A stretch of DNA of 64,000 nucleotides, from positions 1,165,043 to 1,229,042 of the forward strand of contig NZ_JMCB01000003.1 in NCBI RefSeq assembly GCF_000737315.1, in the 5' to 3' direction. This DNA comes from Hyalangium minutum. GTDB taxonomy: Bacteria > Myxococcota > Myxococcia > Myxococcales > Myxococcaceae. Below are positions 743-44,856 of the stretch, piece by piece. The first letter of the stretch is position 1. Each line of letters opens with the position of its first letter. The position numbers and the translations under genes were made by a program. Under the pieces are notes generated by a model. It was not told the DNA's origin and ran no database searches. It saw only the letters and a list, made by a program, of their open reading frames with translations.

Positions 743-3000
743 CACACACCTCCAGCACTCGGGCCCAGGGTGAAAAAGAAAGTGGTTCCCTCGCCCGGCG
801 TGGACTCCAGCCACACCTGCCCGCCGTGGCGCTCGATCACCTGCTGCACGATGGCCAGGCCCACGCCCGAGCCTCCGCCATATGCCTCTTCCGCGTGCAA
901 CCGGCGGAACATCTCGAAGACGGCCTTGTGGTGCTTGGCTGGGATGCCAATGCCGTTGTCTCTCACGTACAGCGCGAAGCCCGCCTCGGCCTTGCCCGAA
1001 GGCACCACCGAGTCCGTGAAGCCGATCTCCACCCAGCGCTCAGGCTTGTCGTTGTACTTGGCCGCGTTGGAGATCAGGTTCGCCAGCACCTCGCGGATGC
1101 GAAGCAAGTCGCAGCGCACCGTGGGCAGCCGCCGGGGAATCCGCACCTCGGTCTTCGTCTCCTCCAGGCGGCCCCGCAGGGTCGTGACGACGTCCTCCAC
1201 CAGCTCCTGCAGATCCGTCTCCTTCACCGACAACTGGATGCGGCCCATCCGCGAGTAGTGGAACAGGCCCTCGAGCAGCTCCACCATCCGCACGCCCAGC
1301 TTTTGGATGAAGGACAGGCGCTCGCGCGTCTCGGGATCCAGGCGGTCCCCGGCGTCCTCGATGATGAAGCGGGTGTAGAGCTGGATGCCACGCAGCGGCT
1401 CCTTCAGATCGTGGCTCGCGATGTACGTGAAGGCGTCCAGCTCCTCGTTGCTGCGCGCGAGCTCCGCGTTGAGCCGGGCCAGCTCCGACGCCTTGCGCAG
1501 CACGACGCCCACCATGGCGCCGCGGAACTCCTGCGCGGCCACCACCTCCTCCGATTTCCACCGGAGGGCCGTGTGGTGCACCGTCTCCTGCCACGCCGCG
1601 AAGGACTTGCGTGGACTCAGCCGCACCCCCTCCTCCACCGGCTTGTGCGGGTTCCCCGCCCACGTGATGCTCTGGAGCACCTCGGGACGGAACCAGAGCA
1701 CCCACTGCGTGGCCGGCGTGGACAGCGGCACGGCGAGCAGGCCGCTCGCCACCTCCGCGAAGGCGGCCGCGGGCGGGTAGGTGCCCGGCAGCGAGTCCGT
1801 CTGGAACAGGCTCTCCCCCGCCACCTGGCCCAGCCAGTTCACCAGCTCCTGCGTCTGCGCCTCCGAAGGCGTGCGCCCCACCGAGGCCCGTCCCTGCTCC
1901 AACCAGACCGTGGCACCGCTCGCGGACACGACGTCCAGCAGGCTCGGGGTGCCGGAGCTCAGCCCCTCCAGGAAGCGCTCCTCCCGGCTCATGCGCTGAA
2001 CGAGCTGGGCCTGGATGGCGCCATGGCGCGCCTGGGCCTCCGCGTGCGCGCGCTGGGCTCGGGCGGAGACCTCTCCCGAGAGCAGCTGCCCGATGAACTC
2101 GCACGCGGCGCGCTCCTCATAGGAGAGCCACCGGGCCGCCAGGTGGTGACAGGCGATCAGCCCCCACAGGCGCTCGCCCTGCATGATGGAGATGGACATG
2201 GAGGCGTTCACCTCCATGTTGCGCAGGTACTCCAGGTGGACCGGCGACACGCTGCGCAGGGTGGCGAAGGACAGATCGAGCGGCTTGTCCGGCACCGCCC
2301 CCCGTGCGGCGACGAGCGGCACCGCGGGCGCCCGGACGTTGGGGATGAGGCGCAGCCAGTTCTGCTCGTACAGCCGGCGCGCCTGGGCAGGAATATCCGA
2401 GGCCGGGAAGTGCAGCCCGAGGAAGCTGTCGACGCCCTCGCGCACGGCCTCGCCGATGACTTCCCCGTGCCAGTCCGCGTCGAAGCGGTAGACCATCACC
2501 CGATCGAAGCCCGTGACGCACCGGATCTCCTCGGCCGCGGCCCCGCAGAGCTGCTCCAAGGTGGCGGCGTTCAAGAAGCGCGTCATGGACATCCGCACCT
2601 GAGCGAAGAGATCCAGCGCCCCCACGCCCCCCTCCGCGTCTCGCGCCTCCACCTCGAGGATGACGACCGCCTCCTGGCGGTGCAGGAGCGCATTGACCGG
2701 CCGCGCCTGGGCGCCCTCTCCCAGCGTCAGCCGCACGGGGTTGGCGGTGCGCAGCTCGACTTGGCCCAGCGCGGCCTGGACACGGGCCCAGGCCTCTCCC
2801 GGCAGCACAGCGGACAGCGGCCTCCCCAGCACCTGCACCGCCTCCTGGCCAAACCACTCGGCCGTGTTGGCGCTGGCCTGAACCACCGTGAAGTCCGGTC
2901 CTCGCAACGCCAGCAGCGCCCCGTGGGCCTGGATGGTGCCTGGAAGATGGATGGGCTCCCGATCACACGCGCTGAGATCGACGGAGGCAGAGACGTTCAT
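742..3000 (-). CDS. bphP: Bacteriophytochrome histidine kinase (PAS-GAF-PHY-HisKA-HATPase)
   Basis: DLSACDREPIH (N-terminal biliverdin-binding Cys), HFPASDIP, PVHLEYL, WGLIACHH, PRKSF tongue, ASHDLKEPLR H-box, N/G1/G2 boxes; ATG at 3000 overlaps the upstream TGA. Confidence 0.95.
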   Translation of the reverse strand: MNVSASVDLSACDREPIHLPGTIQAHGALLALRGPDFTVVQASANTAEWFGQEAVQVLGRPLSAVLPGEAWARVQAALGQVELRTANPVRLTLGEGAQARPVNALLHRQEAVVILEVEARDAEGGVGALDLFAQVRMSMTRFLNAATLEQLCGAAAEEIRCVTGFDRVMVYRFDADWHGEVIGEAVREGVDSFLGLHFPASDIPAQARRLYEQNWLRLIPNVRAPAVPLVAARGAVPDKPLDLSFATLRSVSPVHLEYLRNMEVNASMSISIMQGERLWGLIACHHLAARWLSYEERAACEFIGQLLSGEVSARAQRAHAEAQARHGAIQAQLVQRMSREERFLEGLSSGTPSLLDVVSASGATVWLEQGRASVGRTPSEAQTQELVNWLGQVAGESLFQTDSLPGTYPPAAAFAEVASGLLAVPLSTPATQWVLWFRPEVLQSITWAGNPHKPVEEGVRLSPRKSFAAWQETVHHTALRWKSEEVVAAQEFRGAMVGVVLRKASELARLNAELARSNEELDAFTYIASHDLKEPLRGIQLYTRFIIEDAGDRLDPETRERLSFIQKLGVRMVELLEGLFHYSRMGRIQLSVKETDLQELVEDVVTTLRGRLEETKTEVRIPRRLPTVRCDLLRIREVLANLISNAAKYNDKPERWVEIGFTDSVVPSGKAEAGFALYVRDNGIGIPAKHHKAVFEMFRRLHAEEAYGGGSGVGLAIVQQVIERHGGQVWLESTPGEGTTFFFTLGPSAGGV

Positions 3001-4484
3001 GGAGACCCCTCGGCAGCAGCCAGGCTCGCGCAAGGCGGAGCGTGCCGCGGCAAGCGCACCTCGAACCGGGTGCCCTCTTCCTCGGTGGAGGACACCTCGA
3101 TGTGGCCGCCGTGGGCACGAACAATCTCGTGCACGATGTAGAGGCCCAGACCCAGGCCTTGCGAGAGCCCGCGATCCCGGTGCCCCTCACCCCGGCGAAA
3201 TGGATCAAAGAGATGGGGCAGTAAGTCCCCGGGGATGGGAGGACCGTCGTTGTGAACCGTGAGGAACACTCCGTCCGGCGTGCCCCGGAGCCATACCTCG
3301 ACGGGACCACCGGGCGTCCCGTACTTGAGCGCATTGCCCATCAGGTTCTGCACCACCTGGGTGAGCCGGCCGGGATCCCACGCCCCGTAGCCATCCCCGT
3401 CCATGCGCACCCGGACGCGCCCGCCTCCGTGGTGAACCAGTTCCACCTCTTCGCTCACCTCTCGCACGAGCGCAAAGAGATCGAAGTGCTGGCACTGCAC
3501 CGGAATGCCCCCACCGAGCCGGCTGCGGGTCAGATCGAGCAGGTCTCGGATGAGGCGCTCCATCCGCTCGGCCGCCACCGTGATGCGCGTGGCTCCTCGG
3601 CTCACCGCCTCGGGCTGCTGAGTCCGGTGCAGCACCCGGGCCTGCAGGAGAATCGCCTGCAGCGGCCCTCGCAGATCGTGCCCCACCACCCCCAAGAGGC
3701 GCTCTCGGAACTCCTCCGTCCGCCGCCGCTCCGTGGCGTCCCGCACCACCAGCGCGTAGCCCCGCAGGCCCCCCTCCTCATGGTGCAGGGCGCTCATCGT
3801 CATGTCCGCCCAGAAACGGCTGCCGTCCTTGCGCTGACACCAGCGCTCGCCGGTGAAGTGCCCCTTCTGAGCCGCCTCGGCCAGCTCTCCCCGGGGATGC
3901 TCCTCCTCCTCGGGGGCGAGCAGCAGGCGGAAAGGCTGCCCCAGCGCCTCGGGCTCGCTGTAGCCCGTGACGGCCTGCGCCCCCGCATTCCACGAGGAGA
4001 TGCGCCTCTCCGCGTCCACGAAGAAGATGGCATGACCCTTCACGCCCTCGATGACGAGCCGGAGCGTCTCCCGTGACTCCAGCAGGGCGCGGCGCTGGCG
4101 CCCTCGCTCCAGGGCGAAGCGGACGGTGCGCGGCAGTTGCTCGTACGCATCGAGCGTCTTGGGCAGGTACTCCTCGAGCCCCTCGGGCACCGCCTCCAGG
4201 ACCGTCTCCTCGCGGGTGGTTCCCGTCAGCATGATGACGGGGATGCCCGGGAGCCGCAGGTGAATCCTGCGCAGCAGCTCGAGGCCATCCGCCCAGGGCA
4301 GGTTGTAGTCCAAGAGGGCCAGATCGAACCCGCCCTCATCGAGCGCCCGCTCCCACTCCTCCGCCGTCGCCACCTCGAGGATCACCACGCCCTGGAAAGC
4401 ACGCCGCAGGGTGCGCGCCGCCATGAGTCGGTCCGCCGCGCTGTCGTCGACCACGAGGACACGCAAGGGAGTCGGAGCGCTCAA
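2997..4484 (-). CDS. Hybrid sensor kinase (REC-PAS-HisKA-HATPase)
   Basis: RVLVVDD and LLDYNLP receiver, PAS (ISSWNAGAQAVTGYS), VVGHDLRGPL H-box; probable TTG start at 4484 with GGAGG RBS, overlapping the upstream TGA (ORF-track start at 4886 is over-extended). Confidence 0.9.
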   Translation of the reverse strand: MSAPTPLRVLVVDDSAADRLMAARTLRRAFQGVVILEVATAEEWERALDEGGFDLALLDYNLPWADGLELLRRIHLRLPGIPVIMLTGTTREETVLEAVPEGLEEYLPKTLDAYEQLPRTVRFALERGRQRRALLESRETLRLVIEGVKGHAIFFVDAERRISSWNAGAQAVTGYSEPEALGQPFRLLLAPEEEEHPRGELAEAAQKGHFTGERWCQRKDGSRFWADMTMSALHHEEGGLRGYALVVRDATERRRTEEFRERLLGVVGHDLRGPLQAILLQARVLHRTQQPEAVSRGATRITVAAERMERLIRDLLDLTRSRLGGGIPVQCQHFDLFALVREVSEEVELVHHGGGRVRVRMDGDGYGAWDPGRLTQVVQNLMGNALKYGTPGGPVEVWLRGTPDGVFLTVHNDGPPIPGDLLPHLFDPFRRGEGHRDRGLSQGLGLGLYIVHEIVRAHGGHIEVSSTEEEGTRFEVRLPRHAPPCASLAAAEGSP

Positions 4485-6073
4485 CGCGAACCTCCCTCGG
4501 GAGAGCCCGCCGGCGCCTCGCGCGGCAGTTCGACGATGAAGGTGGCCCCATGCTCTGGCTGGCTCTCCACCGAGATGCGGCCGCCCAGAGCCTCCACCAC
4601 CTGACGGGTGATGAAGAGGCCCAGGCCCATGCCGCCGTAGTGCCGTTCGGACACGCCCCGCTCGAACTTCTCGAAGACGCGCGGGAGGAACGTCGGTTCG
4701 ATGCCAATCCCCTTGTCCCGCACCACCAGCCGCGCCCCCTCCTGAGTCTCCTCCACCCGCAGAGAGACCGTCCGGCCCGCACCGAACTTGAGTGCGTTGG
4801 ACAGGAGGTTCGTCACCACCTGCTCCAGCCGCAGCACATCCCACCGGCCCACGACGCGCGCTGGGGCGTCGATCTCCATCGGGCAACCCGCCGCGAGCGC
4901 CTGCGCCTCGAAGCCCAAGGCCACATCCCTCACCACCGCCGCCAGGTTGACGTCCCGCTCATGCCGCAGCGGCAGGCGGCCGCTGGAGATGCGGGTGGTA
5001 TCCAGCAGGCTGTCCACGAGGGCCGCGAGGCGCCGCAGCTGGCCGTCCGCCGCATCCAGGTGCCGCTTCAACCGCTCCGCCGTCTCCGGTGTCAGTGCCC
5101 CCTTCAGCTCCTTGCGAATGAGCTGCTGGCGCAAGGCCAGCGGCGTGAGCGGCGTCTTGAGCTCGTGCGCGGCCACCGAGAGGAACTCCTCGCGCAGGCG
5201 GACCGCCTCGCGCAGCTCCGCCTCGGTGCGCTTGAGCGCGGACATGTCGATGCTGGCGCCCACCCACTCGCGCACCCTCCCGTCCGGCTCGAAGAGCGGC
5301 ATCCCCCGGACGCTGAAGGGCACGTACACCCCATCCTTGCGCCGCAGCCGGTACTCCGCGCGGTACGCCGTGCGCTGGGCAATGGCCTGCTCCCAGATCG
5401 CCAGGCTGCGCTCCCGATCCTCGGGGTGAATGGCGTCCATCCACCCAAAGCCATGGTGCTCGGCCTCGCTCTGGCCGGTGAACTCGCGCCACGCGGGCGA
5501 GTCCTCGGTGGCCCGGCCCTGGGCATCCTTCGTCCACACCAGCGTGGCCGTGGCCTCCACCAGCGAGCGGTAACGATCCGCCTGCCGCCGCTCCGCCTCC
5601 AACGCCTCGCGCGCCCGCAGCTCCAGCGCCTGCTTCTCGCGCCGCAGGCTGTCCAGCTCGCGGTGCATGAGCACGAGCGTGCTCACCTTGGCGCGCAGGG
5701 CCTCCGGCTCCAGGGGCTTGTGCAGGTAGTCCACCGCGCCACTCGCGTACGCGCGGACGACGGGCGCCTCCTCCCGAGTTGCGCCCGTGAGGAAGATGAT
5801 GGGAATGCGCCGCTCCGGCTCGCGCTCCTGGATGAGGTGCGCCGTCTCGAAGCCATCCAGCCCTGGCAGCCGCACATCCATGAGGATGACGGCAAACTCC
5901 GTCTCCTTCAGGTGAGAGAGCGCCTCCTCGCCCGAGGAGACCTTCGTCAGGCGCTGTCCCAGCGGCACCAGCGCCCGCTCCAGCGCCAGCATGTCCGCCA
6001 CCTGATCTTCCACCAGGAGGAGGTCGACGGGCCGTACAGCGTCCGGCGCAGCTTGGATGGACAATTGGCTCAT
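4481..6073 (-). CDS. Hybrid sensor kinase (REC-coiled coil-PAS-HisKA-HATPase)
   Basis: LLLVED/ILMDV receiver, PAS (GFGWMDAIHPEDR), AAHELKTPL H-box, GMGLGL G2 box. Confidence 0.92.
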   Translation of the reverse strand: MSQLSIQAAPDAVRPVDLLLVEDQVADMLALERALVPLGQRLTKVSSGEEALSHLKETEFAVILMDVRLPGLDGFETAHLIQEREPERRIPIIFLTGATREEAPVVRAYASGAVDYLHKPLEPEALRAKVSTLVLMHRELDSLRREKQALELRAREALEAERRQADRYRSLVEATATLVWTKDAQGRATEDSPAWREFTGQSEAEHHGFGWMDAIHPEDRERSLAIWEQAIAQRTAYRAEYRLRRKDGVYVPFSVRGMPLFEPDGRVREWVGASIDMSALKRTEAELREAVRLREEFLSVAAHELKTPLTPLALRQQLIRKELKGALTPETAERLKRHLDAADGQLRRLAALVDSLLDTTRISSGRLPLRHERDVNLAAVVRDVALGFEAQALAAGCPMEIDAPARVVGRWDVLRLEQVVTNLLSNALKFGAGRTVSLRVEETQEGARLVVRDKGIGIEPTFLPRVFEKFERGVSERHYGGMGLGLFITRQVVEALGGRISVESQPEHGATFIVELPREAPAGSPEGGSR

Positions 6074-6340
6074 GGGCTACCCTTCTCCTCGGGCATCCGC
6101 ACGGACTCCGACACAACGGACACCTTGGGCATGGCCACTTCCTAGAACGCCTCCGGGTCCAGGGACTTTGTTCGTTTTCATGAGCTATCGAGGAGACAAC
6201 GGTTCGCACGGCTGCCCGGTGTGGAGCACAGGCCACAGAGAGGGGGGGGAAGATGTGCCCTGAACTCGCCTGGAGCAATGCCTGAGGCGCTGGGCACGAG
6301 CCGGGTCTGGTAGGGTACCTACCTGGGAGGTCACCCGTTC

Positions 6341-7198
6341 TTGCTCTTACCTATTACCTTGGCCCTGGTGCCCTTCCTGCTCGGGGCACCCCTGGCGCAA
6401 GCCCCAGCGGCCCCGGCCCGTGAAGCGCGTCGGCGCTCTGTCTCCTGGGCCGGCCAGCCCCTGGAGGTCCGCATTGCCACAGGGGTCCGCACGGTCCTGG
6501 TCTTCGCCGCTCCTGTCCAAGGAAAGGCCGTGGAGGTGGACCGGACGCGGATCCAGGTGGTGGATACAGGCGAGCGGTCAATCATCCTCGAACCCTTGAG
6601 CGAACCCCGCCCGGGTGAACGCTGGACGTTGCGCGTCCCCTGGGCGGAGGGCAGGACACCCGAGGCGGCCGAGTTCGCGCTGGTGGCGCACCCTTCCGAA
6701 GTGGACACGGAGCTCGACATTGCCCGGCTCCAGGTCCCAGCCCCCGCCTGTCCGGCGCAGGCCGAGTGCGCGCCGTGCTCCGCCCCGAGTGCAGCGGACG
6801 CCATCGCTTCCGGCCTCATCGACAAGGACGGCGTGCAAACCCTGGCTTTTAGACCCTTCAAGGAAGCTGCGTCCGGCTTCGAGTCGACTGCGGGGGTGTC
6901 CTATCGCGCGAGCACCTGGGTGCTGGTGGATGTGGAGATCATCCGCCCCCCTCGGCACCTGGCATGGAGCCCTGTCGGCGCGACCCTGACGAGCAAGACC
7001 GGAGAGGTGCGAGTGCGCGCCATCAAAATAGAGCCAAACAAAACCTCACCAGAACGCGTCCGGCTGTTCGCGGAGGCGGAGGTGCCACCGCCCAGCGCGG
7101 GGCTCAAATTCACTTTGCACCTGAACGGTCCGGCGGGAGCACCTTCTTTCTCGATTCCGAGCGTGCAACTGCCACCCGCCAAGGAGGTCCAGCCATGA
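6341..7198 (+). CDS. DUF2381-family secreted protein (myxobacterial paralogous family usually next to Ser/Thr kinases)
   Basis: Signal peptide, LEVRIATGVRTVLVF, ALVAHPSEVDTELDI motifs; GGAGG RBS; stop overlaps the kinase start (ATGA). Confidence 0.72.
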   Translation: MLLPITLALVPFLLGAPLAQAPAAPAREARRRSVSWAGQPLEVRIATGVRTVLVFAAPVQGKAVEVDRTRIQVVDTGERSIILEPLSEPRPGERWTLRVPWAEGRTPEAAEFALVAHPSEVDTELDIARLQVPAPACPAQAECAPCSAPSAADAIASGLIDKDGVQTLAFRPFKEAASGFESTAGVSYRASTWVLVDVEIIRPPRHLAWSPVGATLTSKTGEVRVRAIKIEPNKTSPERVRLFAEAEVPPPSAGLKFTLHLNGPAGAPSFSIPSVQLPPAKEVQP

Positions 7199-9054
7199 TC
7201 GGAGCGATGGAACTTCAGCCCGGCACACGTGTAGACGGTTGGCAGATCATCCGAGCCCTGCGCACGGGCGGCTTTGGTGCCGTCCACCATGCCGAGCAAC
7301 ACGGGAAAGCCTGTGCGCTCAAGGTCGCGCTCCACCGGGAGCAGAGCGGCGACACGGGCAAGACCCACGCGCGCGCTCTGCGCGAGGTGGCGCTGCTGCT
7401 GACGCTGGATCATCCCCACATCATCAAGCCTCGCGGCTACGGGTACCTGCCGGATGGCCGCGCGTTCTGCGTGCTGGAGTATGTGGACGGCTGGACGCTG
7501 GGAGACTGGCTGGAGCGCACGCACCCCACGTTTCGCGAGCTTGCGAGCGTGTTCGCCCAGTTGGCCGGAGCCGTAGAGTACATGCACGCGCGGGGTGTGC
7601 TTCACCGGGACTTGAAGCTGTCCAACGTGATGATCCGCAGAACCGGCGAGCCGGTGCTCATCGACCTGGGCTGCGCGACCTCCCCGAATGCCGACGAGCT
7701 GACGGCCACTCCCTTGCCTCCGGGAACCGAGCGCTACCGCTCGCCCGAGGCGCACGCGTTCCTCTCCAAGCAGGGCCGCAAGCCTGGAGCGCGCTATCCG
7801 TTCAAAGTGGCGGATGAGCTCTTCGCCGTGGGCGTCATGCTCTACGAGCTGCTCACGGAGCCGCTCCCGACGAAGGCGAAAGCCCACGCCGGTCTCGCGG
7901 ATCCCGTGGGCCTTCCCGCGTCGCGAACGGTGAACCCGCGTGTCCCCCCGGCCTTGAGTGCGCTCGTGGAGGACTTGCTGGCGCGCAACCCGGCGCTCAG
8001 ACCCGAGAGCTTCGAGGCGCTCCAGCGCAGGTTGGCGGAGCTGGCCCACCATCCCGGTCCGGAATACGCGGCGGAGGTGCACTTGCCCTCTGCGCAGCGC
8101 CAGCCCTCACCCGTTGACGCCGTGCAGGCGGTGGGGCTCGCGGCTTCGGAGAGACAGGGCTGGCGCAAAGTGCTGGCCCTGGCTGACCAGCAGGCAGCCC
8201 GCCTCCGCTCCTGGCTCCAGCCGCATGGGCTCTCCGGCTTGGAGGCTGCCTCTCGCCCGCATGGGCGCAAGCCTCTGGCGCTCGTGGGAGCCGTCGTGAT
8301 GGCTGTAGTGGCAGCCACATGGCTCACCCAGGGCGAGCGCCCTCCACCCGCACCCGCGCGGAGAGAGGCCACCGCTCCCACCATCCCGGCTGCTCCGGCG
8401 CTTCCTCCTGAGGATACCCTGCCTGTGTCTGCTCCCGCTCTCACAGCCGCACCGAAGGAAGGATCCACCGTGAAGCCCCAGCCGTCCGATGATCTCCCGT
8501 CCTCCCGTACCGCACGCGCCCCGAAGTCAGCCCCCGCCCCGGGCTCCCCCGGCTTCGCGGCCTGGTGCAAGACCCTCCCTTTGGCAATGGCTCTCTCGCA
8601 CGGGTGCGCCTCGGTTCCCTTCAAGGCCGAGCTCCTCGAGTGTCCCCCCGGGTCAATTCAAGCCATGAAGAAGCTGGGCTGGGATTTGGGGCGCGATAGG
8701 TTCATTGTCAGACTCGACGAGAGAGGCCCGGACCGTGGCGCGTTCACGTTCACGCTGGGCGCCCCGATCATCGGCGTCGTGCCGGACAGCGCGCCCGGCC
8801 AGGTGAAGGCACCACCTGGCACCCTGTTTTACGGGCGGGCCTACATCAACGACGAGGGGAGGGAGGACTCCCCCCTCGGAATCCTCCGCATCGTCTACGA
8901 CCACGTCGAGTTCCCGGGCCAGAGAAAGTACCCGGTGTGTGCTGTCTCGGGCCTCAACCCGATAGAGGCATTGAAGGACGGCACAGCGACCGCGTTCGCC
9001 AACTCGACAGTCATGCCCCTCGAAAGATGGAACCCGCAGGCAATGCGACAATAG
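7195..9054 (+). CDS. Hanks-type Ser/Thr protein kinase with TM segment and C-terminal extracytoplasmic domain
   Basis: TGGFGAV loop, ALK, HRDLKLSN, IDLG, GTERY; TM ALVGAVVMAVVAATW; AGGAGG RBS before ATG 7195. Confidence 0.9.
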   Translation: MIGAMELQPGTRVDGWQIIRALRTGGFGAVHHAEQHGKACALKVALHREQSGDTGKTHARALREVALLLTLDHPHIIKPRGYGYLPDGRAFCVLEYVDGWTLGDWLERTHPTFRELASVFAQLAGAVEYMHARGVLHRDLKLSNVMIRRTGEPVLIDLGCATSPNADELTATPLPPGTERYRSPEAHAFLSKQGRKPGARYPFKVADELFAVGVMLYELLTEPLPTKAKAHAGLADPVGLPASRTVNPRVPPALSALVEDLLARNPALRPESFEALQRRLAELAHHPGPEYAAEVHLPSAQRQPSPVDAVQAVGLAASERQGWRKVLALADQQAARLRSWLQPHGLSGLEAASRPHGRKPLALVGAVVMAVVAATWLTQGERPPPAPARREATAPTIPAAPALPPEDTLPVSAPALTAAPKEGSTVKPQPSDDLPSSRTARAPKSAPAPGSPGFAAWCKTLPLAMALSHGCASVPFKAELLECPPGSIQAMKKLGWDLGRDRFIVRLDERGPDRGAFTFTLGAPIIGVVPDSAPGQVKAPPGTLFYGRAYINDEGREDSPLGILRIVYDHVEFPGQRKYPVCAVSGLNPIEALKDGTATAFANSTVMPLERWNPQAMRQ

Positions 9055-38880: not shown

Positions 38881-39957
38881 ATGAAGCTTCGTCTCGGCCT
38901 GCTGCTCGTAGCGCTCGGGGCCTTCGCTGGGTGTGACGATGTTGGCGGCGAGGTGGGCCGAGGGGAAGCCGTGCCCGCCGTCGCCCCGCCGCGCCTGTCC
39001 CCTGTCGAGCTGCTCCCTCCGGTCGTGGATCGCTCCGTCACCCAGCGCGTCGAGGTGAGGGATCCGCCTGCCATTCCTGCGGTGCAGGTGGACGTGCAGC
39101 GCCAGGCGGACGGCATCGTCGACATCCTCTGGGTGGTGGACGACTCCGGCTCGATGGCCAACCAGCGGCAGACGCTGACCAACAACTTCTCGCGCTTCCT
39201 GCAGGAGCTGCTGGCGCTGCAGGTGCGCTTCCACATCGGCGTCATCTCCACGAACTACAACGATCGGGGAACGCTGCGCGGCACCACGAAGGTCATCACC
39301 AACGACACGCCGAACCCGCAGCAGGTCTTCTTGCAGAACACCAGCTTCCCGAACGCCTCGCGCGTGCGCCTGGAGCAGGGCCTGCGCATGGTGGAGCTGG
39401 CGCTCACCGAGCCCAACCTCAGCGGCCCGAACAAGGACTTCCTACGGCCGAACGCCGCGCTCGCCGTCATCGCGGTCACGGACGAGGACGACAGCTCCTA
39501 CGGGGATCCGAACTACTACGCGCGCTTCCTTCGCAGCCTGAAGGGGCCGGGCAACGAGAACCTCTCGTCGCTCTCGGTCATCGGAGGCACCACGCCGGAC
39601 GGCTGCTACCCGCCGGGCGAGGAGATCTACTTCGGCGGCCGGGCGGATCCGGCCTTCCGCTACAGCACCGCGGCGACGAAGACGGGCGGCATCATCGGCT
39701 CCATCTGCGACGTGTCCTTCGAGGCGACACTGTTGAAGATCGCCGCCGCGCTCAACACCCTGCGCCGTGTCTTCCCGCTGTCGCTGAAGCCGGACCCGGC
39801 GACGATCACCGTGCGGGTCAACGGCAACCTGATCTCGAAGGACGTGGTGAACGGGTGGCAGTATCGCGCGGAGACACAGAGCATCATCTTCCTGGGCAAC
39901 TACGTGCCACCTCCGGGCGCGCTCCTGCGCTTCGAGTACGCCTTCGTGATCCCCTGA
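38881..39957 (+). CDS. von Willebrand factor A (VWA) domain lipoprotein
   Basis: Lipobox FAG-C; DILWVVDDSGSM MIDAS motif; LAVIAVTDEDD. Confidence 0.88.
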   Translation: MKLRLGLLLVALGAFAGCDDVGGEVGRGEAVPAVAPPRLSPVELLPPVVDRSVTQRVEVRDPPAIPAVQVDVQRQADGIVDILWVVDDSGSMANQRQTLTNNFSRFLQELLALQVRFHIGVISTNYNDRGTLRGTTKVITNDTPNPQQVFLQNTSFPNASRVRLEQGLRMVELALTEPNLSGPNKDFLRPNAALAVIAVTDEDDSSYGDPNYYARFLRSLKGPGNENLSSLSVIGGTTPDGCYPPGEEIYFGGRADPAFRYSTAATKTGGIIGSICDVSFEATLLKIAAALNTLRRVFPLSLKPDPATITVRVNGNLISKDVVNGWQYRAETQSIIFLGNYVPPPGALLRFEYAFVIP

Positions 39958-39965
39958 GGCCGCCC

Positions 39966-41366
39966 GTGAACCGCTCCCCTGCCCTGCTCTTGCTTGCGTT
40001 CCTGGCCATGGTGGGCCTGTCAGCCTGCGCGCGGACGGCCCTCACCCCCGAGTGCCCCGTGGGCTACATCGCCAACGGCGACACGTGCGAGTGCCTCACG
40101 GATCAGGCCTGTCCCACGGGCATGCGGTGCGAGGCCGGCGTGTGTGCCTGCCGCGACACCGCGTGCTGTCCGGAGGGCCACGAGTACTCGCCCACGAGCG
40201 AGTCCTGTGTCTGCCGGGATGACTCCTGCTGCCCCGCGGGCCACGTGTGGAACGCCCAGGAGAACCGCTGCGAGTGCGGAGATCAGGAGTGCTGCCCCTC
40301 GGGCTACACCTTCGACACCCAGGCGGGTGGGTGCCGCTGCACGGCGGACAACTGCTGCCCGCAGGGCTTCCGGTACGACGCGACGGCCGAGCGCTGCGTG
40401 TGCAACTCGGACGAGTGCTGCCCGGTGGATCACCGCTACGATCCCGAGCGCAAGGACTGTGTCTGCGCGAAGACCTCGTGCTGCCCGGTGGACCACACGT
40501 ACAGCGCCTCGGTGAAGGCGTGCGTGTGCAACGGCGACTCGTGCTGCCCCACGGGGTACCGGAAGGATCCGTCCAAGGAGCGCTGCGTGTGCATCAGCGA
40601 CGCGGCCTGTGGCACGGGCAAGTTCTGCGATGCGGTGTCGGGCGGGTGCCTGTGCCGCGACAACTCGGGGTGCAAGCCGGGCCAGTACTGCAACGGGCTG
40701 GGCTTCTGCCAGGCGCTCGGCAACTGCACGACGAACGCGGACTGCCCGGCGGGAAACTTCTGTGACATCACCACGGACCGCTGCATCCCCAGCGGGCCCT
40801 GCACGCTCGACGAGCACTGCGGCTTCGGCCAGCTGTGCGATTCGCAGACGGCGCGCTGCCGCCCCGGGTGCCGCCGGGACGCGGACTGTGCCGACAAGCA
40901 GGCGTGCGAGGGGGGCCAGTGCCGGGACTACTGCCGCCTCAACGCCAGCTGCGACGTGAACCAGTTCTGCACGCCGGCCAACGGCGTCTGCGCGGCGCAA
41001 TCCAGCCGGGTGGACTGCCGGGACTGCACGGGCTCCTCGGGTGTGTGTGGCTCGGGGGCCTCGTGCCTGACGTTCATCAGCGAGGGCCAGACGCGGAACT
41101 TCTGCGGGACGCACTGCACGAGTAACGAGGAGTGCCCCTCGGGCTTCGACTGCACCGAGGTGATCTTCTCCTGCACCACGGGCGAGGGCGGCGCTTGCCC
41201 CGCGGACAGCAGCGCACCGGGCCAGACTTTCACCTGCAAGGGCTACCAGGTGGAGAATGAGGCAGGCACCCGCTTCTACTGTGCGGACGCCGGGGGTCAG
41301 CCGCACGTCTACATCCAGGCCTGTGCCCCACTGTCTGGCTTCTGCCCCGCCACGGAATTGCCGTAA
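39966..41366 (+). CDS. Cysteine-rich repeat lipoprotein
   Basis: GTG start, lipobox LSA-C; 7 tandem 21-aa CxCxxxxCCPxGxxY repeats followed by Cys-rich modules. Confidence 0.85.
   Translation: MNRSPALLLLAFLAMVGLSACARTALTPECPVGYIANGDTCECLTDQACPTGMRCEAGVCACRDTACCPEGHEYSPTSESCVCRDDSCCPAGHVWNAQENRCECGDQECCPSGYTFDTQAGGCRCTADNCCPQGFRYDATAERCVCNSDECCPVDHRYDPERKDCVCAKTSCCPVDHTYSASVKACVCNGDSCCPTGYRKDPSKERCVCISDAACGTGKFCDAVSGGCLCRDNSGCKPGQYCNGLGFCQALGNCTTNADCPAGNFCDITTDRCIPSGPCTLDEHCGFGQLCDSQTARCRPGCRRDADCADKQACEGGQCRDYCRLNASCDVNQFCTPANGVCAAQSSRVDCRDCTGSSGVCGSGASCLTFISEGQTRNFCGTHCTSNEECPSGFDCTEVIFSCTTGEGGACPADSSAPGQTFTCKGYQVENEAGTRFYCADAGGQPHVYIQACAPLSGFCPATELP
40143..40583 (+). repeat. 7 x 63-bp diverged tandem repeat encoding CxC-x4-CCP units
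   Basis: First unit TGT at 40143; eighth (partial) unit TGC at 40584, exact 63-nt period. Confidence 0.9.
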
Positions 41367-41418
41367 CACACCTCGTCAAAACCAGTGACTGTGGGCACTT
41401 GGGAGGAGAACCCTGCCT

Positions 41419-41802
41419 ATGAGCGGATCCACCGTGAATCAGCATCCTTCCGTGATGTTCGAGATCATTGCCCGTGATCAAGAGAAGGCCAAAGCCTTCT
41501 ACACAGCCGTGTTCGGCTGGTCTTACGAGATCGGAACCGGCGGCTTCGCGTACATCCATTTTCCACGGCACTCGACGCCGCTCCTCGGAGGCATCGGCCA
41601 GGTCCAAAAGGGCGTGCCGGGCTTCGAACCGGGTCACAACTTCTACCTGCTCGTCGATTCGCTCGAAGCCACGATCCAGAAGGCTGTCGAGGCAGGCGGC
41701 ACGAAGTTCGTCGATCCGGTCAGCGTGGACGGCTATCGTTTCGCGATGATCCGGGACCCCGAAGGCAACCCGATCGGCCTCATCGAGCCCTTCACACGCT
41801 GA
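41419..41802 (+). CDS. VOC / glyoxalase-bleomycin resistance family protein
   Basis: VMFEIIARDQEKAKAFYTAVFGW...RFAMIRDPEGNPIGL. Confidence 0.9.
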   Translation: MSGSTVNQHPSVMFEIIARDQEKAKAFYTAVFGWSYEIGTGGFAYIHFPRHSTPLLGGIGQVQKGVPGFEPGHNFYLLVDSLEATIQKAVEAGGTKFVDPVSVDGYRFAMIRDPEGNPIGLIEPFTR

Positions 41803-41839
41803 CGCATCACCTGCCCCGTCTTCTCCAGGAGAATCCGCC

Positions 41840-43801
41840 ATGAGTTATCTCAACGCGCTCCGGCTGCATTTCGCGGGGCGCTTCCAAGCGAACGTCTCGA
41901 CGGTCAACAACGACCCGGGCCACTACGACAACACGATCTTCCAGCAGAGCTACCAGCAGATGGAGGGCGTGAACATGAACCCGCCCAACGGCTGGTTCAA
42001 TCCGCAGGGCGACGCCGACTGGCGCTTCCTGGGCTGCAAGATCACGTCGGCATGGATGCCTGGGCCGCAGAACCCACCGACGGTCCCCTCTGTCGCAGTG
42101 CCCACCAGTGATCCAGTCCTGGCCTGCATCATCGCCGACTCTGACCAGCGGGCACCGGCCAAGCTGGCCGATCTCGATCCCGAACAGCAGCTGGTCTCGG
42201 AAATCTGGGGACTGCAGGTGCGGATTGCCGACGCCACCGGCAATACCTTAATGCGCGGCGACTTCGAGCACGTGGCGTTCATCGACATCTGGGATCGCGC
42301 TACGGTCTCTTCTGGCGGCGACGCCGACGCCGGCGCCGTGTACCAGTCGGTGCTGAAGAACCTGCAATGGGGCGATGTCTCGAAGTCGCCGTTCCTGCTC
42401 GCGCTGCAGAAGGCGGCGAGTGACGGGCTGCTGTCGATCAAGTTCAACGTCGACGCCTTCAACCTCGACTACACCCGGCCCGGCTTCATGACCGGACGGA
42501 TTGCGGGCACGATCGGGCCGGCGAGCAAAGATGAACCGATGCACCTGGTGATCGGCCGGCAGTTCATGGCCGGTCCGAACGCGGGCGGCAACTTCTACAA
42601 GCCGCCGGGCGGCATCAACTATTGCGCCGCGCGTGTCGATGCCAACGCGAACTGCATCTATCTCGACCTCGGCAACGCGCTGCCGACGGCAGCTGGCGGC
42701 GCGATGGAGGATCTCGGCGATCTCACGCTCAGCGTCTCCTCTCCGGCCTCTGGCAGCACGACCGCGCTCGGCACCATCCCCGCGAAGGGAACGAACGGCT
42801 ACGCCATACCCGATGGCAGCTGGTATTCGAAGACCGCCGGTGTCGTCGTGCTGCCGATCAATCCGCAGTTGATGAGCCAGGTACAGACCCAGCCCCTCAC
42901 CCTGTCGGGCAATCCGAAGGTGACCATCAGCGAATGGCCGAGCGGCGCTTTCGTGCGCGCCGACACGTTCGTCTACCGCCTCAGCCCCGGCGATACCGCG
43001 TCGATCCCGGTCTATGCGATGCAGTTCGGGCAGCCCTTGCCGAAGGTTCAGATCTCCTTCGTCGCAGATTCTTCACAGTTGCAGGCGCAGGAGGGCTCTG
43101 GCTTCCCGTTCGTCATCACCAGCCCGAACGTCGCAACACCCGCGAACGCGATCCAATTCGCGGCCAGCGCCACCACCAATGAACAGGGTTGCGCCACGCT
43201 CGCGCTGACCGCCAAGGATCCCGGCACCCCGCGCAACTTCAACATCACGCCGGCCAATCCGACGGGTGACTACGGCATTGATGGCCAGGTCTATGGCGTG
43301 CGCGCGGGATTCGTCGACACCCAGACGTACGGCAGCCAGCCCGAGAACCAGTGGAACTTCATCAGCTTCCTGGTGTGGAGCGGCTTCACGCCCAAGTCCC
43401 CCGGCAACCCGACCTGGAACGACGACCTGCAGCCGATCTTCACGCAGTACGCGAACCTGTATCCCGTGATGAGCCGCTTCCTGAACCTGTCCGACTACGC
43501 GTCGGTGAAGGCCAACAGCGGCCTGCTGTCGCTGGCGTTCGGCTTGAACGTGGCGAATCCGAACTCGATGCCGGTGACGCGAGACCTGTCGCCCGCGAAG
43601 CGCCAGGCGATCCTGCAATGGCTGCAGAACGGCCTGCCGCTCGGCGAGGCGCCACCGCCCAAGGCATCGGCGCGTGTCGCACTGCCGCAACCCACCCCGC
43701 CTGCCACCGCGACGCCAACCCCCCCCAAGAAGGGCGGTAAAGCCATGGCGGCTGCGCGTCGGCTGGTGGTGCAGAAGACCCGCAAAGGAGAGCGCTCATG
43801 A
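41840..43801 (+). CDS. Protein resembling the N-terminal and central part of VioB/RebD/StaD-family enzymes
   Basis: N-terminus MSYLNALRLHFAGRFQANVSTVNND resembles VioB (PRIHFRG..VNAPTANRD, from recall); C-terminal YANLYPVM...MPVTRDLSPAKR motif. Confidence 0.65.
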   Translation: MSYLNALRLHFAGRFQANVSTVNNDPGHYDNTIFQQSYQQMEGVNMNPPNGWFNPQGDADWRFLGCKITSAWMPGPQNPPTVPSVAVPTSDPVLACIIADSDQRAPAKLADLDPEQQLVSEIWGLQVRIADATGNTLMRGDFEHVAFIDIWDRATVSSGGDADAGAVYQSVLKNLQWGDVSKSPFLLALQKAASDGLLSIKFNVDAFNLDYTRPGFMTGRIAGTIGPASKDEPMHLVIGRQFMAGPNAGGNFYKPPGGINYCAARVDANANCIYLDLGNALPTAAGGAMEDLGDLTLSVSSPASGSTTALGTIPAKGTNGYAIPDGSWYSKTAGVVVLPINPQLMSQVQTQPLTLSGNPKVTISEWPSGAFVRADTFVYRLSPGDTASIPVYAMQFGQPLPKVQISFVADSSQLQAQEGSGFPFVITSPNVATPANAIQFAASATTNEQGCATLALTAKDPGTPRNFNITPANPTGDYGIDGQVYGVRAGFVDTQTYGSQPENQWNFISFLVWSGFTPKSPGNPTWNDDLQPIFTQYANLYPVMSRFLNLSDYASVKANSGLLSLAFGLNVANPNSMPVTRDLSPAKRQAILQWLQNGLPLGEAPPPKASARVALPQPTPPATATPTPPKKGGKAMAAARRLVVQKTRKGERS

Positions 43802-44856
43802 TCCGCCTTCAACGTTCCCTCATCGAAGGGCTGAAGTCGTCCATCCCCGAGATATTGCTCCAGGCGCTGCGGCAGGCGCTGCAACAGGCGGTGATGCTGG
43901 AACACTCCACCATCCCGGTCTACCTCTACGGGCTGTATTCGCTGGACGAAAGCAAGAACGGGGCGATCGCGGAGATCCTGCAGTCGGTGGTGGTCGAGGA
44001 AATGCTGCACATGACGCTGGCGGCCAACGTGCTCAACGCACTCGGCGGCTCGCCCGCGATCGATACGCCGGACTTCATTCCGACCTATCCGGGCAACCTT
44101 CCCGGCAGCGTCGAGAGCAGCCTGGTCGTGCATCTGCGGCCGTTCTCGCAGGATCAGCTGATGACCTATCTGCAGATCGAGCAGCCGGCCAAGGCGATCG
44201 ACATCCCGTCGGATGCGCAGTCCGCGGACGACGGCATCACCATTGGTCAGTTCTACGATGCGCTCGCGGCGGCGATCACGGTGCTCGCGGTGATCGACCC
44301 CAAGGCGTTTGTCAATCCGGCGCGCAACCAGGTCGGACCGGACTTGATGTGGGGTTCGGTCATCGTCACCGACGCCGCCTCCGCGCGGAAGGCGATCGCG
44401 ACCATCGTTGAGCAGGGCGAGGGCTCGAAGGTCTCGCCCGACGAATCCACGGACGGTCCCCCCGCGCATTACTACCGCTTCATGCAGATCTACGCCGGCG
44501 CGATGCTCCAATCCGCTCCGGGCAAGACACCCCCGTGGGCCTACAGCGGTGCTCCGGTCTTGATGGACGTCGAAGGCATCTACCCAGTGCCGAACAACCC
44601 CAAGGCCGCGAACTATGCGCCCGGCTCGGCGCAGGCCCTCGCCAACGACATGTTCAACTACACGTACACCTCGCTGCTGAAGGCGCTGCATGCGCTGTTC
44701 AACGGCCAGAACACCCAGGATCAGCTGAACGTGGCGATCGGGTTGATGATGTCGCTCAAGGGGCAGGCGAAGGCGATGATGGCGGGCATTCCCAACCCGT
44801 CCGCGCCCTACACCGGACCGAGCTTCGAATACAAACCGGTGCTCCCGGCGCGCTGA
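43798..44856 (+). CDS. Ferritin-like domain protein (type found at the VioB C-terminus)
   Basis: LEHSTIPVYLY, EEMLH, IEQP, TIGQFY, EQGEG, HYYRF; ATGA overlap with upstream stop. Confidence 0.85.
   Translation: MIRLQRSLIEGLKSSIPEILLQALRQALQQAVMLEHSTIPVYLYGLYSLDESKNGAIAEILQSVVVEEMLHMTLAANVLNALGGSPAIDTPDFIPTYPGNLPGSVESSLVVHLRPFSQDQLMTYLQIEQPAKAIDIPSDAQSADDGITIGQFYDALAAAITVLAVIDPKAFVNPARNQVGPDLMWGSVIVTDAASARKAIATIVEQGEGSKVSPDESTDGPPAHYYRFMQIYAGAMLQSAPGKTPPWAYSGAPVLMDVEGIYPVPNNPKAANYAPGSAQALANDMFNYTYTSLLKALHALFNGQNTQDQLNVAIGLMMSLKGQAKAMMAGIPNPSAPYTGPSFEYKPVLPAR

Follow-up and report, generated by a model that had tools for sequence, protein, structure and literature searches.

Three consecutive genes on the forward strand of the Hyalangium minutum genome form an operon that encodes, in order, a protein of the VOC/glyoxalase fold, a 653-amino-acid (aa) protein (open reading frame A, ORF-A), and a 352-aa ferritin-like protein (ORF-B). 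They lie in a stretch of 64,000 nucleotides (contig NZ_JMCB01000003.1, positions 1,165,043 to 1,229,042), hereafter the window, whose own numbering and forward strand apply to all features below. Profile comparisons make us highly confident that ORF-A and ORF-B are homologs of the VioB/RebD/StaD superfamily in a split architecture, with ORF-A (41840-43801) equivalent to the N-terminal ~600 residues of VioB/RebD/StaD and ORF-B (43798-44856) to the C-terminal ~400 residues of VioB. VioB, RebD, and StaD are heme-containing enzymes that couple two tryptophan-derived imines at C-beta (PMC10851217), and they thereby catalyze the key C-C coupling of bisindole natural products. The cassette is an unexceptional representative of a sister family of VioB that is very large, lacks annotation, and occurs mostly in split form. 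VioB, RebD, and StaD are thus a small branch of a much larger, mostly split superfamily, whose ORF-A half is covered by no Pfam or NCBIfam model and carries the label "hypothetical protein" throughout. In the window, three genes that had been uninformative until now can be annotated with confidence.

Homology of ORF-A and ORF-B to VioB, RebD, and StaD

The likeness of ORF-A to VioB is visible only at the profile-profile level. As a single sequence, ORF-A had no match in Pfam, NCBIfam, or the Protein Data Bank (PDB), the last of which was also searched with a 30-sequence profile. Genuine VioB-type proteins were fetched using a VioB probe sequence, and all later steps used database sequences only. 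The fetched set comprised source-named VioB proteins from Chromobacterium, Janthinobacterium, Massilia, Pseudoalteromonas, and Myxococcus together with actinomycete chromopyrrolic-acid synthases. A 20-sequence VioB/RebD-type alignment was compared with the family alignments of ORF-A and ORF-B using hhalign. The ORF-A family matched VioB/RebD with a probability of 99.3% (E-value 2.7e-20, 521 aligned columns), residues 1-590 of ORF-A being aligned to VioB columns 1-629. The ORF-B family matched with the same probability (99.3%, E-value 6.7e-21), residues 19-345 being aligned to columns 648-1003. Because this coverage is colinear, the two proteins tile the whole of VioB in order. A preliminary description of this DNA, made from the sequence, had called the pair VioB/RebD/StaD-like, and this holds over the whole length. 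The identity to VioB is ~19% for ORF-A and ~27% for ORF-B, which indicates a distant sister family rather than a VioB ortholog. On the VioB equivalog model TIGR04492, which stands for iminophenyl-pyruvate dimer synthase and chromopyrrolic acid synthase and has a whole-protein cut-off of 1250 bits, ORF-B matched weakly at positions 659-865 of 1003, and the fused relatives of ORF-A gave weak, colinear matches of at most 30.6 bits.

The N-terminus of ORF-A reads MSYLNALRLHFAGRFQANVSTVNNDP. An alignment of homologs shows that aa 1-31 (41840-41932) form a conserved motif, MSYLxxLRLHFxGxFQANVSTVNND..., in which M1, S2, Y3, L4, R8, L9, H10, F11, G13, F15, Q16, and S20-D25 are invariant; S2, R8, F11, G13, and T21 are aligned to residues that are invariant in VioB/RebD too. 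Toward the other end, the octapeptide MPVTRDLS (aa 577-584; 43568-43591) is aligned to YYMPSTRELSxPKA of VioB and lies in a C-terminal module (aa 526-596; 43415-43627) that is helical in the predicted model. The motifs common to the A half and VioB/RebD are GTIG, GRxx, LGDL, and MPxTR(D/E)LSxxK. All the motifs quoted in the preliminary description (the VioB-like N-terminus, MPVTRDLS, and, in ORF-B, LEH, EEMLH, EQGEG, and HYYRF) are present, and they are invariant or nearly so in 20-30 homologs. ORF-A ends with a conserved tail, GGKAxAAARRL (aa 632-647; 43733-43780), in which G632, G633, K634, A637, R640, and R641 are invariant in 30 homologs. The tail was modeled as a helix of low confidence and the preceding proline-rich, low-complexity linker as disordered; this tail could be a docking peptide for ORF-B or another partner. 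Over its length, ORF-A has more than 150 invariant positions and a mean column identity of 62% across phyla, an extreme conservation more in keeping with an enzyme than with a scaffold.

The AlphaFold2 model of ORF-A (predicted local distance difference test score, pLDDT, 78; predicted template-modeling score, pTM, 0.81) consists of beta-sandwich domains followed by the helical module. A check of both proteins against VioB by profile and by structure had been proposed; the profile part established homology for both halves, and the structural part returned only generic immunoglobulin-like (Ig)/macroglobulin domains from the PDB when the ORF-A model was searched with Foldseek (template-modeling score, TM, <0.15), matches that we set aside as uninformative. 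We found no solved VioB, RebD, or StaD structure in the PDB, and a 2021 review states that none had been reported.

The pair resembles VioB/RebD/StaD in its N-terminal motif and in a PF12902 half with the same E, EEMxH, QGEG, and H residues. It differs in that VioB/RebD/StaD are single fused polypeptides of ~1000-1100 aa, whereas here two ORFs meet in an ATGA overlap, and in that A-B has a VOC partner instead of an adjacent flavin adenine dinucleotide (FAD)-dependent tryptophan oxidase, VioE, or P450. With queries from Myxococcus stipitatus, tblastn gave no match to VioA, VioC/D, or VioE in the window, and no VioA or VioE within ~8 kb of the relatives at 87 loci, where VioC/D gave one marginal match (E-value 8e-4). 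The absence of a tryptophan oxidase and tailoring genes, as first described for the window, thus extends to the surroundings of 87 relatives. VioB was likewise not found by tblastn in the plasmid collection. One further locus carries a split pair at L090:328-3584, made up of a protein 42% identical to VioB (P0470) and a 417-aa PF12902 protein with a 4-nucleotide (nt) overlap; its upstream side ends at the contig end.

A candidate cofactor site in ORF-B

ORF-B matches PF12902 over profile positions 1-220 of 221 (207.6 bits, E-value 2.9e-61), far above the gathering threshold of 22.3. Alignment points to a putative metal/heme half-site (43900-44010) made up of E35 (43900-43902), within LEH at aa 34-36, and E67-E68-M69-L70-H71 (43996-44010), the EEMLH motif at aa 67-71. 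These residues are invariant in the ORF-B family, and their VioB/RebD counterparts, E612, E671, E672, M673, and H675, are invariant as well. A second motif pair (44410-44481) comprises EQGEG (aa 205-209) and HYYRF (aa 224-228). Here, Q206, G207, E208, G209, H224, Y225, Y226, and R227 are family invariants, and the pair is aligned to Q804, G805, E806, G807, and H819 of VioB.

The ORF-B profile also matches bacterioferritins (9viw, E-value 1.1e-7; 1nf4, E-value 8.5e-6). In the comparison with Desulfovibrio desulfuricans bacterioferritin (1nf4), helices A and B align in register, so that E35, E68, M69, and H71 fall on E23, E56, M57, and H59, which we take to be two di-iron ligands, the heme-ligating methionine, and a histidine ligand. 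The sequence of ORF-B thus contains a bacterioferritin-type first half-site, with a glutamate on helix A and E-M-x-H on helix B. In the region of the second half-site, which in bacterioferritin comprises a glutamate on helix C and ExxH on helix D, the family alignment has only E208 (in QGEG) and H224 as invariant candidates, with no ExxH. ORF-B differs from bacterioferritin in being twice as long, in having no clear second ExxH half-site and a weak global fold likeness, and in being paired with a 653-aa partner instead of forming the known 24-mer cage. We infer that the conserved residues provide a specific candidate site for heme and iron in ORF-B. The ligand set E35, E68, M69, H71, E208, and H224 is a concrete, mutable cofactor hypothesis, and the split form offers two smaller, separately expressible subunits; together, these could help explain heme/iron binding across the superfamily.

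The ORF-B model (pLDDT 73) has its best structural match in CC_0557 (PDB 3hl1; TM 0.67), an uncharacterized structural-genomics entry of the same family and fold (sequence E-value 1.4e-17) with which it has EMLH and QGEG in common. The model resembles ferritin, Dps, and bacterioferritin weakly (Foldseek E-value >0.3). Standalone PF12902 genes of the 3hl1 kind mostly have no ORF-A partner, as exemplified by 180 mostly rhizobial plasmids.

A large and mostly split family

An exhaustive profile search with the ORF-A family over 1.84 billion cluster representatives retrieved 1,816 proteins at E <= 1e-3 and 717 at E <= 1e-30, most of them 560-670 aa long. They span ten or more phyla, are nearly always split, and, where named records exist, are all annotated "hypothetical". 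Close homologs (60-74% identical) occur in Myxococcota, Alpha-, Beta-, and Gammaproteobacteria, Acidobacteriota, Actinomycetota, Chloroflexota, Planctomycetota, Verrucomicrobiota, and Gemmatimonadota, and distant ones on plasmids of Cyanobacteriota and Bacteroidota. The A-B family is larger and taxonomically broader than the characterized VioB/RebD/StaD family: the 1,816 proteins are 50%-identity representatives, compared with 84 90%-identity clusters retrieved with a word-indexed VioB probe, two counts whose libraries and methods differ.

In 76 of 80 species-representative loci, ORF-B lies directly downstream of ORF-A, and at least two of the four others are cut by a contig end. Natural A-B fusions, recognized by their size of 870-1070 aa, account for 17 of the 150 top family representatives (~11%), and all six that were tested carry PF12902 right after the ORF-A-like region. 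Such Rosetta-stone fusions indicate that A and B act as one unit. One fusion of 1068 aa (P0356) has an extra C-terminal ricin-B lectin domain (PF14200).

In the window, ORF-A ends and ORF-B begins in an ATGA overlap (43798-43801) indicative of translational coupling; the 4-nt overlap is also found in many relatives. Each gene has its own Shine-Dalgarno motif, AGGAG, 7-8 nt ahead of the start codon, at 41827-41831 (8 nt) for ORF-A and at 43786-43790, within the 3' end of ORF-A, for ORF-B. The coordinates and overlap given in the preliminary description were verified, and its view that this is a true two-subunit form rather than a frameshift is borne out by the independent start signals and by the conserved split. 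The reading that the pair is a broken (frameshifted) fused VioB-like gene, a pseudogene, is effectively refuted by the comparative data. Fused versions do exist in the family, but the split form is the majority state, both proteins start at a family-invariant methionine behind their own Shine-Dalgarno motifs, and ORF-A keeps its conserved C-terminal tail. We therefore rejected it.

In a neighbor-joining tree, ORF-A of the window groups with the copy of Lysobacter hankyongensis (70% identity) and related Lysobacteraceae copies, apart from other Myxococcota copies, a position consistent with horizontal acquisition. In the plasmid collection, standalone PF12902 genes occur on 180 plasmids, mostly symbiotic ones of Rhizobium/Sinorhizobium, and ORF-A homologs on 8; most ferritin-like subunits must therefore have other partners or none.

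The VOC partner

The first gene of the cassette (41419-41802) encodes a 127-aa protein that matches PF00903 (31.7 bits; cut-off 20.6) and PF18029 (31.7 bits). Its homologs, 45-79% identical, are found in 40 of the 80 related loci, nearly always directly upstream of ORF-A. A neighborhood analysis of split homologs, which had been suggested along with the idea of a VOC partner, thus upheld both the A-B order and the association with VOC. The closest solved structure is Mycobacterium tuberculosis Rv0577 (3oxh, E-value 2.5e-20); more distant are Streptomyces VOC-family "glyoxalase/bleomycin resistance" proteins (5ump and relatives), which we take to be enediyne-sequestering self-resistance proteins of the TnmS type.

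In an alignment of 41 homologs, the invariant positions are H9, E15, and numerous closely packed aromatic residues, whereas E115 and the canonical C-terminal glutamate, E123, are not conserved. The protein thus lacks the full set of four conserved ligands, including the C-terminal glutamate, of a metal-dependent glyoxalase I or extradiol dioxygenase. For this reason, it would be a ligand-binding or non-canonical catalytic partner rather than a classical dioxygenase, possibly like VioE. VioE, the catalytic chaperone of the violacein pathway, is small and has no cofactor; its gene adjoins that of the dimer synthase, whose unstable product it captures (PMC9705886). The VOC protein is likewise small, aromatic-rich, and syntenic with A-B, and the analogy would be one of role, as its fold is unrelated to the lipoprotein-carrier-like fold of VioE.

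Genomic neighborhoods of relatives

The ebo clusters adjoin A-B in 6 of the 80 species loci and on plasmids of three lineages. A complete ebo cluster is contiguous with VOC-A-B in Ralstonia pickettii, Cupriavidus sp. amp6, Burkholderiaceae bacterium 16, Massilia aquatica, and Pseudoduganella flava; at L021, for example, eboA, B, D, E, F, and C (980-7075) are followed by VOC (7595), A (8001), and B (9942). In Azospirillum picis, a complete ebo cluster flanks A-B. On plasmids, ebo clusters are contiguous with A-B in Mycetohabitans (two paralogous pairs) and Aureibacter, and on a Gloeothece plasmid A-B adjoins eboB and eboD. Two megaplasmids from different strains of the fungal endosymbiont Mycetohabitans endofungorum (L081 and L087) carry divergent A-B pairs, 54% and 34% identical to ORF-A of the window, each directly followed by ebo genes whose order (eboD, E, C, A, B, F) is shared by both. 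In the tree, ebo-linked copies turn up at scattered depths, on the deepest branches as well as on the shallowest. Since ebo clusters occur in 3,304 of 124,295 genomes (2026 preprint), adjacency in ~12% of A-B loci is far above chance.

The known roles of ebo and the related EDB clusters (eboA-F) include thallusin biosynthesis, scytonemin precursor export, and nematode repellence. A-B is not among the six defined ebo genes, and it is not mentioned in the ebo publications that we read. The same preprint links ebo to the biosynthesis of thallusin, an algal morphogen, in which the oxidative conversion of saccharoquinoline to thallusin (ring opening) has no assigned enzyme. The EDB cluster of Pseudomonas fluorescens NZI7 is described in a 2026 review as six ebo genes plus three of unknown function, whose expression yields indole derivatives including new dimers. 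The attachment of A-B to ebo is therefore timely, both for the unassigned oxidative step and for the three unexplained EDB genes. We rejected A-B as the universal missing ring-opening enzyme, because it adjoins ebo in 2 of ~15 ebo-bearing plasmid lineages and because the thallusin study found no conserved oxidase (2026 preprint); it may be that enzyme in a subset of lineages.

A LodA/LodB pair, that is, an amino-acid oxidase of the cysteine tryptophylquinone (CTQ) type, immediately precedes A-B at two loci of Verrucomicrobiota, as a LodA/GoxA-type protein plus a LodB flavoprotein (L063:4912-7827; L067:4824-7862). LodA/LodB also occurs near A-B in a locus from an Allosphingosinicella metagenome-assembled genome (L009) and in Mycetohabitans, and, in fungi, lodA genes with PF12902 neighbors had already been recorded in an earlier survey. 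By analogy, the order LodA/LodB-A-B echoes the logic of VioA followed by VioB, with an unrelated oxidase.

An extended cluster, found mainly in Lysobacteraceae and Ramlibacter, comprises a TonB-dependent receptor, a VTT/DedA membrane protein, a secreted protein (c15), a second A'-B' pair, VOC-A-B, and a DJ-1/PfpI protein. The secreted c15 (~335 aa, e.g., L074:3560-4564) has no Pfam or PDB match and is encoded at 11 A-B loci, some of them linked to ebo; its gene follows ORF-B in L038, L078, and L009. It could be one of the signal-peptide-bearing non-ebo ORFs of the Pseudomonas EDB cluster. Neither c15 nor c23 is homologous to ORF-A.

In an alternative array, B' is followed by a pyrroloquinoline quinone (PQQ)-like propeller and then by the propeller protein c35 (L024:5063-6679; also L004, L013, L026, and L062). 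The last ~70 residues of c35 are homologous to the helical module of ORF-A in the MPVTRDLS region (BLASTP E-value 3e-4; hhalign probability 78%, E-value 1.7e-5). Because a homologous module ends propellers encoded beside extra ORF-B copies, its sequence suggests that the helical module is a portable adaptor that docks partner proteins onto the ferritin-like subunit.

Two Azospirillum plasmids (L085 and L086, ~4900-8800) carry distant A-B pairs with a divergent LysR regulator, an ABC importer, an IorAB-like two-subunit Mo/2Fe-2S oxidoreductase of the xanthine dehydrogenase family, and a GMC oxidoreductase. By its gene content, this neighborhood looks like a catabolic context.

No ebo homologs are found in the window. 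The name "orphan", which was given at first, has to be limited, as orthologs are repeatedly attached to ebo, LodA/LodB, and TonB-receptor clusters.

Probable function and alternatives

On balance, we think it somewhat more probable than not that A and B form a heteromeric oxidase that uses heme or iron and has an electron-rich aromatic metabolite as its substrate, while a ligand is captured by the VOC protein. ORF-A would be a beta-sandwich body with a C-terminal helical adaptor, and ORF-B a bacterioferritin-like helical bundle carrying the metal site and probably heme. The pair would use heme and/or non-heme iron with O2 or H2O2 to carry out a C-C coupling or ring opening on an aromatic enamine, imine, or polyphenol-type metabolite, and the small VOC protein, rich in aromatic residues, would take charge of the reactive product, either binding or rearranging it, much as VioE serves VioB. 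The contexts of relatives (ebo, LodA/LodB, and TonB/VTT/DJ-1), together with the open thallusin step and the EDB indole dimers, suggest an indole-type compound, a hydroxyquinoline-type compound, or an amino-acid-oxidase product as candidate substrates. A wider proposal, which we consider unlikely, is that A-B pairs constitute a large, structurally unsolved superfamily of heteromeric heme/non-heme-iron oxidases whose ebo-linked members perform late oxidative ebo steps that have no assigned enzyme. Heme would then sit between ferritin-like subunits on the bacterioferritin-like M69, and the steps might include, in some lineages, the opening of the saccharoquinoline ring to give thallusin-type chelators, or the formation of the Pseudomonas EDB indole dimers. 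The stand-alone myxobacterial VOC-A-B would do the same chemistry on a substrate made elsewhere in the genome or acquired from other organisms.

Several observations weigh against the oxidase reading. ORF-B scores 19.4 bits and ORF-A has no match on TIGR04492, far under the cut-off, and with identities this low, the chemistry may differ greatly from that of VioB. The second ExxH of the ferritin di-iron site is not evident in the ORF-B family alignment. The VOC gene is missing from half of the 80 species loci. There are no ebo, LodA, or Vio genes in the window, and most relatives also have none within 8 kb. From the other side, most ebo clusters have no A-B, and the plasmid lineages and the thallusin study speak against a general role there, as described above.

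The main rival, possible but rather doubtful in our judgment, is a catabolic or protective cassette, in which the A-B oxidase and a VOC binding/resistance protein would degrade or neutralize an exogenous aromatic compound. The target might be, for example, a quinoline/thallusin-type iron chelator, an antibiotic, or a signal, which other bacteria would import via the linked TonB-dependent receptor. It would account for the grouping of the window copy with Lysobacteraceae copies that lie in TonB-receptor/VTT/secreted-protein/A'-B'/VOC-A-B/DJ-1 clusters, for the likeness between the VOC protein, which lacks a conserved canonical metal glutamate, and VOC proteins of the 5ump class that sequester ligands, for the isolation of the cassette among housekeeping genes, and for the LysR regulator, IorAB-like oxidoreductase, and ABC importer beside the Azospirillum copies. 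The characterized relatives VioB, RebD, and StaD are all biosynthetic, however, the ebo and LodA links point to biosynthesis, and no transporter or receptor adjoins the cassette in the window. The more particular idea that the cassette detoxifies prey metabolites, raised in the preliminary description, found no specific support.

Three observations could be taken to favor a quite improbable iron-storage or oxidative-stress module, with a ferritin-, bacterioferritin-, or catalase-like ORF-B, ORF-A as scaffold, and no small-molecule substrate: the ferritin-like fold and E/E-M-x-H half-site of ORF-B, the Ig-like beta-sandwiches of ORF-A, and the catalase activity that RebD reportedly has. Such a module sits poorly with the weak similarity of ORF-B to true ferritins and Dps, with the conservation of ORF-A, and with the recurrence of the family in secondary-metabolite contexts. 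Membership in a classical bisindole pathway (violacein or indolocarbazole), with the tryptophan oxidase and tailoring genes elsewhere in the genome, is very improbable. The homology to VioB is genuine and full-length, and some myxobacteria do carry genuine vio operons (Myxococcus VioB). In the reference vio locus, however, myxobacterial VioB is a fused protein of 1003 aa flanked by VioA, VioC, and VioE, and a tblastn search with M. stipitatus VioB at E 1e-3 did not detect the window. The A-B family also occurs in genera not known for bisindoles (Ralstonia, Bradyrhizobium, Lysobacter, and Pseudomonas cichorii). Given the scores far below the VioB cut-off and the lack of VioA or VioE near any of the 87 loci, we rejected membership in the classical vio/reb/sta pathways.

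Other features of the locus

A Shine-Dalgarno-like GGAGGAG (41402-41408) precedes the VOC gene. Scans for sigma-70 promoters and intrinsic terminators at the locus gave nothing over background. The gene 3' of the cassette encodes a PfkB sugar kinase and is convergent, and the wider flanks are housekeeping in nature (glycyl-tRNA synthetase, two Ser/Thr kinases, RecO, a TPR protein, a lytic transglycosylase, and RpoC). Since the cassette stands alone among such genes, its substrate must be supplied by another part of the genome or by the surroundings of the cell. The GC content is ~65-68% throughout, with no marked island signature. Directly 5' of the cassette, 38881-41366 encodes a lipoprotein (358 aa) carrying a vWA-like DDSGSM motif and a protein of 503 aa built of cysteine-rich CxxG repeats. 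These two adjoin A-B in no other genome, and none of the remaining flanking genes of the window is conserved with the cassette across the 80 species loci.

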